The position numbers and the translations under genes are program-made. A stretch of DNA of 63,985 nucleotides, counting the filler, from Lenisia limosa (Eukaryota > Protista > Breviatea): assembly GCA_001655205.1 (NCBI GenBank). It is 15 parts of 15 records of this genome, joined end to end, with 100 filler letters (N's around TTAATTAATTAA, not from the genome) between each part and the next. Parts side by side here need not be neighbours in the genome. Positions count along the whole stretch, not along the records: positions 24,127 to 39,593 come from LPNZ01009591.1; 14 more parts are not named here. One strand, 5' to 3'. This document shows, one piece after another, positions 25,483-37,369 of this stretch. The stretch's first letter is position 1, and each line of letters opens with the position of its first letter. The notes below the pieces were generated by a model. It saw nothing but the letters and a program-made list of their open reading frames with translations, did no database searches and had not been told where the DNA came from.

Positions 25483-26119
25483 GAAATTGGCATCTAACAA
25501 CGTGAAAATCCATTGAATGCCAAAAAAAAACTGAAACAAATACTAAATAATGACAAAATTGATAATTATCTTAAAATTCCAGGAAAATTTATACCTGGAG
25601 CCTGGGGCCCGGGATACCTTGAAAGACAGGTCCAAAAATCTTGCTGTTTTGGTGTTTTCCGTTTTTCTTTGATTCTGGAAAAAGTTTGCGGAAGTAACAT
25701 AACTTTTGTGATATTTTTGTGAATTTGACCCCAAAAGTTCCAGAAATTCTTTACTTGNNNNNNNNNNTTCGGTTTCTAACGTCATTTTAAAAGGATGTAA
25801 GATAAGAAAAGGCTGTTTTTTCGACTTTTAAAACCGTTTTTCCAATTAGGCAAGTAAGGAACTTTCTGGAACTTTTGAGGTCACATTCACAAAAATATCA
25901 CAAAAGTTTTGTTCCGCAAACTTTTCCCGAAATCTAAGAAACAGAAAACACCAAAAACAGCAAGATTTTTGAACCTGTCTTTCAAAAAAGGTACCCCGGG
26001 CCCCCCGATATGAATTTTCCTGCAATTTTAAGAAAATTATCAATTTGGTCATTGTTTAGTGTATTTGTTTCAGTTTTTGTGGCATTCAATGAATTTTCAC
26101 GTTTTTAGGGGCCAATTTC
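25483..26119. mobile_element. Foldback element: about 275-bp imperfect inverted arms with a spacer of about 90 bp
   Basis: 25483-25757 is the reverse complement of 25851-26119 (for example gaaattggcatctaacaacgtgaaaat versus ttttcacgtttttaggggccaatttc). Confidence 0.88.
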
Positions 26120-31441: not shown

Positions 31442-32690
31442 TTCATCAATAATCACATAATCATATTTCATCAGAGTTCTATCACTAAGAATCATTTGCC
31501 TCAGCACTCCTAGTTAATTAAAGATACGGAATCATACCTAATGTGACAACTAAAATAGAAGTTTGGTCCCAACAGGCTTTTCTTCCACCAATTTGAAATC
31601 CAACATCAGAGCCGAGTCTGACACCTTTCTGTTTCGCGATATGTCGTGCAACTGATACTGCTCCAACTCTCCGTGGTTGAGAAAGCAGAATTTTCGTGGC
31701 TTTATTTGTAGAGGCCTCAAGCAGATATTGAGCCACTGGTTAACCGTATTGAAAACCTTGTGTACTTTTACCAGAACCAGTTTCTCCAGCAATAATTACA
31801 ACCTGATTGTCTTGGATCAGTTTAAGAATGACATTTCTGTATTGATATATTGGCAATTGGGATCTTTCCTGAAAAGTGCCCTTGAGATATTTCAGTCTCA
31901 GTGCAAATTCAACTCTAAAAAAAACCTTCTCTTTTAACTGAAAGGCTAAATGTATCATTTATTAAAATTGCCTCTTTGCTCTCATTGCCTCATAAGACTT
32001 CTGAAAAATACAAGCCTTGTTGACAACTTCCATTTCATCAGATGATAATTTTGGAATTAAATGAGTTTCTTCAATCCTTCTAACTCCACCTTCTAACCTG
32101 ATGTAGATTTCACTCATTAAAAAATTACAAAAATACCGAAAACGATTTCGATGGTAAAGTGGGTAGCCATTTGATGAAATTTTTACAGCTCCAATTCTTA
32201 ACCATAGTACACATAATTCAACCCTATTTCCAAATTGTTTTAAAAAATCCTTATCCAGGTCATCTTCAACTGCAACAGGAATGAATATACACTCATAATC
32301 ACGAATAGGAGGCATATGTTCGTTAAAAACAGAATCAATTGCCTTTCTAGCCTCATCTTTATCTCTAAATCGAAAAGGTACACCTATTCAAAAACAATAA
32401 AACCACCTCGGACATAACCATCATCATTAACTCCAAATACAAGATCACCACCTTCAGTATTCGCAAAAGCGTTTCCAAAAATGGGAGTTATTTGCCGGAC
32501 ATAAGCCGAAATATCTTTTTCATATGCTGCAGACTATAACCATAGAAAGTAAAACCTTATATTCCATGTGCTTTGTTTCTTCAAACCCAAAAAAATGTCT
32601 TCTGACCAGCTTGGCTGGAATTAGTGGTTGCTGCCTTTGAAATTTAACTCTTGTAAGCAACTCTGGAGCATTTGGGAAAGGTATCTCCAT
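31442..32690 (-). CDS. Schlafen/AlbA_2 domain followed in frame by a DExH (DEAH/RHA) helicase N-terminus; truncated; ultrashort introns
   Basis: FFGFEETKHMEYK|22-nt intron|..GNAFANTEGGDLVFGVNDDGYVR|23-nt intron|GVPF is AlbA_2. ERSQLPIYQYR..IIAGETGSGKSTQ|21 nt|VAQYLLE..SQPRRVGAVSVARHIA..GSDVGFQIG..VTL|28 nt|GVLRQ..YDYVIIDE is DEAH. TAATAA at about 31959-31964 separates the two parts. Confidence 0.8.
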
Positions 32691-35813: not shown

Positions 35814-37005
35814 CTAAATAGGGAATAAATTCAAATTTGAAAAGTAGTCAATCATTTCAGTTATCCCATCTTCAGTAATCTGTGTTAATAATAATAGAAG
35901 CAAACTTCAGGATGGTCAAATTCAAAACCAGTCTCCTCTAGTCTTGAACCATCTACCGAGAGGGAATTATTCAACAGTAATTCAGTATCCAAATAAGGTG
36001 AAAGTGGTGTATTCAAGATATTAAAACGCTGATAAAGATATATAATAAAAAAACTTTACACATTTCTGACCAAGGTTGCATGTGCTTTTCATTAATAGAT
36101 TCAACAGTTTCAGCGAAAGAAAAAGTTTTAACAATATGACTCTTCAATAGACCCACACATGAGGCCTCAATATCAAAAACATTTTTTACAAGAGAACAAA
36201 TTTTTGATTGATCAAGTAAAAGTCACAATCAACCTAAATCAGAATGATCAACAATATTATATAAAATTTCTGAATTGTTAAGTGTGGTAAGATGCCAAAG
36301 AGCACGAACAACATCAAGGACATGAACACAGTTAACTTTAAGATCAGGCAACATCACATAAGAGAAAAAAACTGCCCAGAGAAATTTCATTTCTTCTTTT
36401 AATTCCTTGTAAACGGTGGCACAAATCAATCTTGGCACGGATTATATATAACATATACTTAAAGAGGATACATCTCCAGGTCCATAAATATAGGCAGGTC
36501 TCATTACCTTGTACCGCAAATTGGGGATGTTTTTTAATTCATTCTCAACTTTCATTTTTGCGATAGCAATATTAGTCCAAGGTTCAAGTTTGTCATTTTC
36601 ACAAGAAGGTTTCTTGTTGGCTGTATAGAGTTGACAGCTGGACATTTCAATGAACAACTCAACCCCACACTTTGCTGCCATTTCAGCACAACCAACAGAT
36701 AGATCTACTATCCCAGAGGCATAAACCGCATCACTCTGGGAGTACTTCATTTCACCTGCCAAATTAAAAACATATTTGAAATTCCCAATAAACACTGAAG
36801 AGACTGTAGCTGCTTGGGTTAGGTTTCCTTGGACAAACTCCACAGTTTCATCATTAAATGCTTCAATAAATTCCTCATTCAAATAGGCCATAGATGGGAT
36901 CACCTTATCTACAACTCTTATACGACTACAAATAGCAAGATCAACAAGATACTTCACCAAATGCCTTCCAACAAATCCCGTTCCTCCAAGTATCAAAACA
37001 TCCAT
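35814..37005 (-). CDS. NAD-dependent epimerase/dehydratase (extended SDR), with five 21-26 nt introns
   Basis: MDVLILGGTGFVGRHLV (GxxGxxG), MRPAYIYGPGD, PRLICATVYKELKEEMKFLW, NCVHVLDVVRALWH, EKHMQPWSEMC, NTPLSPYLDTELL and YFSNLNLFPI*. Introns at 36438-36458, 36349-36372, 36213-36233, 36029-36054 and 35880-35905. Confidence 0.88.
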
Positions 37006-37369
37006 TTTCAGATATATCTATATCAAATATCAAAATATGAGCAAAATCACACAGGCACTCTGGACCAGGGTGCCAGCGATGAGGGGTACCAGGCATGATC
37101 CCTGATCTTTAATAATTTTCGCTGATGTTTCCTGATGTAAATTTTTTTNNNNNNNNNNNNNNNNNNNNNNNNNNNNNNNNNNNNNNNNNNNNNNNNNNNN
37201 NNNNNNNNNNNNNNNNNNNNNNNNNNNNNNNNNNNNNNNNNNNNNNNNNNNNNNNNNNNNNNNNNNNNNNNNNNNNNNNNNNNNNNNNNNNNNNNNAGTT
37301 CGCACATCTCGCTTTAATACTGAGTTCTTGGCAGAGAGACAGAGCTTGTTCGTCTATATAATAGTTAAT

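Follow-up and report, generated by a model that had tools for sequence, protein, structure and literature searches.

Intron-like segments of 21-24 nt without a 3' AG in a conserved epimerase gene suggest spliceosomal introns that end in CG or TG

A conserved NAD-dependent epimerase/dehydratase gene is interrupted by three short segments, designated E1, E2 and E3, that start in GT and have CCG or TTG as their last bases, and comparison with homologues argues strongly that all three must be removed to yield the constrained protein. The segments are probably U2-type spliceosomal ultrashort introns, taken out of the pre-mRNA despite having no 3' AG. The gene lies in a window of 63,985 nt (the whole stretch of DNA that was analysed, from the Lenisia limosa assembly GCA_001655205.1), and its features are as follows, in window positions:

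35814..37005, minus strand: NAD-dependent epimerase/dehydratase (extended SDR) gene, recognised by Pfam PF01370 and by full-length homologue alignment
ATG 37005 and TAG 35816-35814, minus strand: start and stop codons of the epimerase gene
37005-36459, 36437-36373, 36348-36234, 36212-36055, 36028-35906 and 35879-35814, minus strand: epimerase exons
36458-36438, minus strand: E1, 21-nt intron-like segment GTATATGTTATATATAATCCG, GT..CCG, phase 1, with an in-frame TAA
36372-36349, minus strand: E2, 24-nt intron-like segment GTTTTTTTCTCTTATGTGATGTTG, GT..TTG, phase 0, no in-frame stop, 62% T
36233-36213, minus strand: E3, 21-nt intron-like segment GTTGATTGTGACTTTTACTTG, GT..TTG, phase 1, with two in-frame TGA
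36054-36029, minus strand: canonical 26-nt intron GTTTTTTT..TTTATCAG, removal of which restores the frame and the conserved C-terminal half
35905-35880, minus strand: canonical 26-nt intron GTTTGCTT..TTAACACAG, removal of which restores the frame to the conserved LFP C-terminus

Removal of the five short segments leaves a coding sequence of 1074 nt, or 357 amino acids plus the stop, where the preliminary description had counted about 370 undamaged codons. Unspliced, the frame from ATG 37005 runs for 187 codons to TAA 36444-36442 and then for 70 codons to TGA 36231-36229, meeting TGA 36225-36223 after one further codon before it continues. The N-terminal ORF matches PF01370 (E=1.6e-18; 67.4 bits, cut-off 20.9), its relatives in the PDB are UDP-sugar epimerases and SDRs, and the Rossmann GxxGxxG motif is present as GGTGFVG at residues 7-13. 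The full-length protein scores 477 bits against a profile of 53 homologues. An exhaustive search of 1.84 billion representatives returned 1223 relatives, the closest with 53% identity, and the closest relative in the JGI metagenomes also has 53% identity. The family is found in Drosophila, ticks, Rhodnius, Mucorales, Anaeramoeba and numerous unnamed metatranscriptome sequences, a spread too wide to help with taxonomy. In a single-gene tree the sister group of the epimerase, weakly supported (88/71), is an animal clade that contains arthropods. The genetic code of the gene looks standard, with Q always encoded by CAA or CAG and W always by TGG, and the terminal TAG falls at the point where the homologues end. 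A ciliate-type or other reassignment of stop codons was considered and rejected, the stops being confined to the segments and the TAG end being that of the homologues.

The three strings first reported for these segments are found exactly where they had been placed, on the minus strand, and the stops said to lie in frame in E1 (TAA) and E3 (both TGA) are those that interrupt the unspliced reading. The peptides said to be restored were also reproduced: SSL-M-PRLICA on removal of E1, SDL-D-QSKI on removal of E3, and LWAPDLKVN on removal of the in-frame, stop-free E2. Both 26-nt introns end in canonical CAG, as had been stated (TCAG for 36054-36029 and ACAG for 35905-35880). In a 16-homologue alignment the segments appear as clean gaps of 7, 8 and 7 residues, the remainder aligning end to end, and they are missing from all 53 full-length homologues. 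On this comparison, the segment pattern at the three sites exceeds chance.

The boundaries were examined with a profile HMM of the 53 full-length homologues, against which 3762 candidate in-frame removals around E1-E3 were scored (10 to about 100 nt, leaving at least 330 codons open). E1 as GT..CG came top of 1213 candidates at 477.2 bits, E3 as GT..TG tied for the top at the same score, and E2 as GT..TG (24 nt), also at 477.2 bits, lay at most 0.4 bits below the best removal. Each segment has just two or three equivalent boundary positions; the E3 boundary GT..TG, for example, is equivalent to GG..TT. No GT-AG, GC-AG or AT-AC removal that keeps the conserved residues was found in the in-frame scan around E1-E3. 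The closest removal with canonical-type ends at E1 is AT..AG, of 24 nt, which costs 13.5 bits and loses an invariant Pro-Arg. The closest GT-AG removals span 63 nt at E1 and 87 nt at E3 and are each 48 bits worse, and among the scanned candidates none exists for E2. No AG dinucleotide occurs inside E1, E2 or E3. The earlier remark that nearby AGs give stops or the wrong frame holds for the first three AGs 3' of each GT, which lead to a frameshift and an early stop with one exception, a 63-nt in-frame removal that loses 14 conserved residues.

The epimerase is clearly under purifying selection, as judged from its alignment to homologues. Of 52 columns in which at least 80% of homologues agree, it has the majority residue at 50 (47th of 54 in rank, the median homologue having 90%), and its terminal branch length is 0.89, the median being 0.96. 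With 50 of these columns kept and 357 codons free of stops and frameshifts, the gene is hard to square with random decay, as was argued at the outset. No paralogue or relative closer than 53% identity was found in 5.8 billion proteins or 1.84 billion representatives, and an intact paralogue with canonical acceptors, looked for as a refutation, did not turn up in the protein collections, which include the gene calls of the ENA metagenome assembly ERZ3820729. With the epimerase under constraint and no second, intact copy in those collections, the stops in E1 and in E3 have to be removed by some means. No transcripts of the source organism were found in any collection searched.

The contig that carries the epimerase has six canonical introns of 20-28 nt, all of which end in YAG. 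Two are those of the epimerase gene, and four belong to a neighbouring gene, the only other one recognised on the contig, that served as an internal control:

31442..32690, minus strand: internal-control gene with a weak Schlafen AlbA_2-like N-terminus and DEAH-helicase motifs I-II
32555-32534, minus strand: control-gene intron, 22 nt, canonical
32403-32384, minus strand: control-gene intron, 20 nt, canonical
31756-31736, minus strand: control-gene intron H3, 21 nt, canonical, in frame, contains TAA
31537-31510, minus strand: control-gene intron, 28 nt, canonical

H3 is placed between GETGSGKSTQ and VAQYLLE by PDB alignments to DHX16, DHX8 and Prp22. Read through, it encodes GFQY, which resembles VAQY of the next exon, and one PDB alignment paired H3 with the helicase VTQY; a tandem-duplication test of H3 gave 11 of 21 identities, only the 95th percentile of the background. 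The AlbA_2 match of the control gene (E=3.7e-5) is just under the Pfam cut-off, and no relatives of the AlbA_2-like ORF were found. Two long same-frame ORFs in this gene are split by TAA TAA followed by ATG (31959-31964, minus strand), and no GT-AG intron joining the two was found. The exon after helicase motif II (IIDE) ends at GTAAGAG, 31442, and the ~4 kb that follow yielded no other recognisable helicase exon. Either truncation of the control gene or a long intron in it could account for this.

The contig is gene-poor and repeat-rich, with a GC content of about 36%. It matches NODE_380 (26,627 nt) of the SPAdes assembly ERZ3820729, with a coverage of 36.8x, and sequences of its source organism turned up in this metagenome assembly only. 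No rRNA, tRNA or snRNA was found on the contigs by Rfam and tRNA scans, and ten other ORFs of the window had no Pfam matches. A pogo-like DDE element on the contig has relatives only on two other contigs, of the same sample, that hold nothing but transposable elements. Pogo/Tigger-like DDE copies with weak matches to PF03184 lie at L002:16605-17192, L003:5157-5552 and L004:330-1178, in this single sample only, and one such copy has an internal deletion. The other pogo/Tigger contigs are covered more deeply (53x and 70x) than the main one, which is what a genomic repeat should show. A short repeat with near-identical ORF-like stretches (…ERQVQKSCCF…, …RQVKNFWNFWGQIHKN…) is also present in several copies and in both orientations:

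window 25498-25719, plus strand: short repeat copy
window 25849-26055, minus strand: short repeat copy
L002:11083-11358: short repeat copy
L002:19522-19755: short repeat copy

The runs of N within the contig part are masked low-complexity sequence, such as poly(A) upstream of the epimerase. The run at 37149-37296 (L001:2374-2521), just upstream of the gene, is masked real sequence in which two poly(A) tracts (about 20 and 30 A) surround some 80 nt.

E1-E3 share several features with the canonical introns of the contig. Their lengths of 21, 24 and 21 nt fall within the canonical range of 20-28 nt, and their T content (43-62%) is that of the six canonical introns (33-62%), exon 1 having 32%. All three can be written as GT...G at a best-scoring or tied boundary; given the few equivalent boundaries, the chance of three GT starts is estimated at ~0.007 and that of three terminal Gs at ~0.006. 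The 5' ends are GTATATGT for E1, GTTTTTTT for E2 and GTTGATTG for E3, and the third base is T in seven of the nine introns. An A at position 17 of 21, four nt before the terminal G, is common to E1, E3 and the canonical 21-nt intron H3. More generally, an A precedes the terminal G by 4-5 nt in E1-E3 and by 3-5 nt in the six canonical introns; the chance of a spacing of 3-5 nt in nine of nine introns is estimated at ~0.02 in such AT-rich sequence, which is statistically weak, though suggestive. The lengths of E1, E2 and E3 are all multiples of three (chance about 0.04), and this is left unexplained by the spliceosomal model.

Signals of other kinds were also looked for in the three segments. 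E1-E3 have neither the U12-type 5' site /RTATCCTT nor, at 10-15 nt from the 3' end, a TCCTTAAC branch site, and there is no TCCTT motif. Tandem duplication of the flanking exon as the origin of the introns is not above the shuffled background, and no significant end-pairing structure was predicted (folding z of -0.3 to -1.5). At 36203-36243, minus strand, the exon that follows E3 begins with bases (UGAUCAAUC) able to pair with the 5' half of the segment (GUUGAUUG), at -7.5 kcal/mol; this is not significant (z = -1.46), 16 of 200 shuffles folding equally well.

E1 occupies a position at which other eukaryotes have an intron. The Drosophila biarmipes orthologue (L047) has a canonical intron at the homologous codon, TTA A/GTGAGT...TTTACAG/TG CCG, which has in common with E1 (TTA A/GTATATG...ATCCG/TG CCA) its position, phase 1 and the exon junction TTA A/TG CC. 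A TARA marine eukaryote (L007) also has an intron at this position, and so does a Logan contig (L005), in which it is 23 nt long and reads GT..CAG. Because position, phase and junction are as in Drosophila, there is a strong case from gene structure that E1 is an old spliceosomal intron whose acceptor is now CG. No intron is present at the positions of E2 and E3 in the three orthologues examined (Drosophila, L007 and L005). The proposal that three introns independently lost the A at -2 is thus favoured by the ancient position for E1 but does not extend to E2 and E3, which are not at shared positions and, by the same comparison, may never have had an AG. In Rhodnius prolixus, protein T1HA61 has about five extra residues near GDKTALGIKLTSARL, exactly at the E1 intron position. 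These look like a retained or mis-set intron boundary in the annotation, which hints that the E1 position is shared there too.

A similar gap was observed in the orthologue of L005 (ERR14789928), an unrelated eukaryote whose canonical introns are 22-25 nt long and whose epimerase groups with Mucorales. At L005:995-1027, and identically in L006 (ERR14822394), the gene has a 33-nt in-frame gap containing TAA, GTTTTATGTTCTTAAACTAGATTGAATAGCCGT. Both GT-AG choices in this gap (20 and 29 nt) shift the frame, and the only in-frame GT..G removal is one of 24 nt that ends in TTG. Alternatively, removal of the 20-nt intron followed by a +1 shift at GAA TAG also restores the frame.

The 3' AG is almost universal in introns. 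In the second catalytic step the terminal intron G pairs with the first intron G, and in spliceosome structures the A at -2 pairs with the branch adenosine; because of this contact, a pyrimidine at -2 should impair the second step. In the mechanism proposed for E1-E3, the 5' GT would be recognised in the normal way, and the putative branch adenosine would lie just 3-5 nt from the 3' end. This would leave so little slack that 3' cleavage could be fixed by the distance from the branch point or from the 5' end, as by a ruler, with essentially one nucleotide able to reach the active site. The terminal G alone would still be required at the 3' end. Since distance would set the 3' site and only that G would be needed, the -2 position would be free to be a pyrimidine, as in CCG and TTG, instead of A.

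The suggestion that the spliceosome accepts GT-YYG introns draws on features of the DNA, namely the need for removal, the likeness of E1-E3 to introns, the position of E1 and the lack of a canonical alternative. From these features we infer that the spliceosome takes the segments out of the RNA, where the branch point lies and where exactly the 3' boundary falls, the last to within 1 nt for E2 and E3. It counts against spliceosomal removal that the three odd introns are all in one gene and that the four introns of its neighbour are canonical. More tentatively, the lineage, probably one of parasitic animals with ultrashort introns, could have a whole class of AG-independent GT..YG introns in which the 3' cut is measured and only the terminal G is needed, a view held with less than even confidence. 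The nine introns are too small a sample for the frequency of the non-AG type.

Several other explanations would also leave a conserved gene with such interruptions. Introns that cannot be spliced would be expected if the gene were recently inactivated, if this were a silenced allele with mutated acceptors, or if its transcripts were only substrates for nonsense-mediated decay. The AG is normally indispensable, and all three lesions fall within a single gene, the other six introns of the contig being canonical, as such an account would have it. It is nevertheless unlikely, given the open and conserved reading frame, a branch length that is not raised, the lack of an intact paralogue in databases that contain this assembly, and the improbability of three precise hits at -2. 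Neutral decay is contradicted because decay that struck the acceptors (three of the five, at -2) would have erased the conservation. It is scarcely credible that AG is truly present at all three sites and was lost as an assembly or base-calling artefact. The contig does come from a metagenome SPAdes assembly, but at 36.8x coverage such an artefact would take three independent miscalls exactly at -2, with none detectable elsewhere in 1074 coding bases, and the comparable case in the unrelated organism (L005/L006) is identical in two independent runs. Removal at the DNA level, with the contig representing germline DNA and the segments being short germline-limited sequences like ciliate IESs, is very unlikely. 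The sizes of the segments are near those of the smallest ciliate IESs, and DNA elimination has reportedly been found in dicyemids. Against it stand the lack of TA or direct-repeat boundaries (compared by hand, the longest repeat is a single G at E3), the GT at all three starts, the spliceosomal position that E1 shares with Drosophila, and a gene that is animal-like rather than ciliate, with a standard-looking code.

Retention of the segments in the mRNA, by stop reassignment, readthrough or ribosomal bypass, would be eased by lengths in multiples of three, which preserve the frame. In-frame stops, however, occur in none of the 357 conserved codons as against three of the 22 segment codons, the gene ends at TAG as its homologues do, and glutamine and tryptophan have their usual codons. 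As for bypass, E1 and E2 lack matching take-off and landing codons, and folding gave no sign of a stable structure (z -0.3 to -1.5). The alternative to a tolerant spliceosome that had been offered earlier, editing of the acceptor to AG, would need C-to-A and U-to-A changes, for which we know of no editing system or mechanism. Retention and editing together are given hardly any probability. A more limited alternative concerns E2 alone, which might be a translated lineage-specific insertion of eight residues (VFFSYVML), being in frame, without a stop, and at a position where Drosophila, L007 and L005 have no intron. There is a minor but appreciable chance that this is so. E2 is missing, however, from all 53 homologues, it is 62% T as against 32% in exons, its start GTTTTTTT is identical to that of the canonical intron at 36054, and it ends in TTG as E3 does.

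Read as spliceosomal introns, E1-E3 can be compared with the shortest introns of animals. Myxobolid Myxozoa, with a median of 22-27 nt, and Dicyema, with about 26-27 nt, have ultrashort GT-AG introns (PMC13644364, PMC6543705, PMC2222250, PMC4986447), and among animals introns of this kind are known only from myxobolid myxozoans and dicyemids (PMC13644364, PMC6736024, PMC4986447, PMC2222250). These resemble the introns of the contig in their 20-28 nt size, their reduced 5' signal (GT plus little else), the lack of a polypyrimidine tract and the A residues shortly before the 3' end. The Dicyema japonicum genome (36.7% GC, 49% repeats; PMC6736024) is, like the contig, repeat-rich and gene-poor, at ~36% GC. 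Base composition, repeat load and intron sizes of the contig are compatible with a dicyemid and with a myxobolid myxozoan alike. The myxobolid and Dicyema introns are described with an AG end, whereas three of the nine here have none, and their 5' end is described as 'GTa', whereas the third base here is mostly T (7/9). A recent survey of ultrashort animal introns, with annotation by BRAKER3 and long-read transcript evidence, found AG 3' ends (PMC13644364). A BRAKER3-type pipeline would be expected to miss introns without AG.

Tiny introns are also known from Paramecium (about 25 nt), Stentor (15-16 nt) and chlorarachniophyte nucleomorphs (18-21 nt), and among these ciliate and nucleomorph introns lengths of 3n with in-frame stops occur. 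Their length is comparable to that of E1-E3, but they obey GT-AG, and, in distinction to ciliates, the epimerase gene keeps to the standard code and clusters with sequences from animals. U12-type introns have their 3' site chosen by its distance from the branch point, and they tolerate variation in the 3' terminal dinucleotide. This resembles the proposed model, although RTATCCTT and TCCTTAAC are missing here and, to our knowledge, E1-E3 are far shorter than any U12 intron. Appendicularians (Oikopleura, Fritillaria) and euglenids have many non-GT-AG introns, which are removed by the major spliceosome or by unknown machinery. Their variation is mostly at the 5' end or at the two ends together, whereas the 5' GT is intact here, and euglenid introns rely on an end-pairing structure, none of which is predicted for E1-E3. 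The bypass segments of T4 gene 60 and the mitochondrial byps combine matching codons, a stop and a hairpin at take-off, and E1-E3 do not show this combination. TG sites in human introns are said to be minor, close to a normal AG and in introns of ordinary length. TG has been reported as the 3' splice site of 36 human U2-type introns, which are GT..TG introns of the major spliceosome that keep the terminal G and have a pyrimidine at -2, like E2 and E3, and which show that this spliceosome can use YG (Szafranski et al. 2007, PMC2374985). The human TG sites are described there as alternative 3' splice sites, whereas those of the epimerase gene would be constitutive, with no AG partner; the segments here also differ in being 21-24 nt long and in that one of them ends in CG.

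Searches of the literature on myxozoans, dicyemids and short-intron organisms brought up no ultrashort introns with constitutive acceptors other than AG. The 3' AG is among the most invariant signals of eukaryotic gene expression and is read by RNA-RNA contacts in the catalytic centre, and a conserved gene that needs three non-AG introns removed suggests that this rule can be relaxed. In introns reduced to about 21 nt, part of what the sequence normally signals may be supplied by geometry. If confirmed, E1-E3 would be a variant of the spliceosomal intron and not a new kind of element. Pipelines that accept only GT-AG, or that call gaps of ~20 nt deletions, would then miss GT..YG introns, and genes of this type in the genomes of myxozoans, dicyemids and the like would be broken by annotation and spliced-alignment software that presupposes GT-AG or a minimum intron length. 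The gene models of these genomes would be faulty in a systematic way, which could be part of the reason for their low completeness scores.
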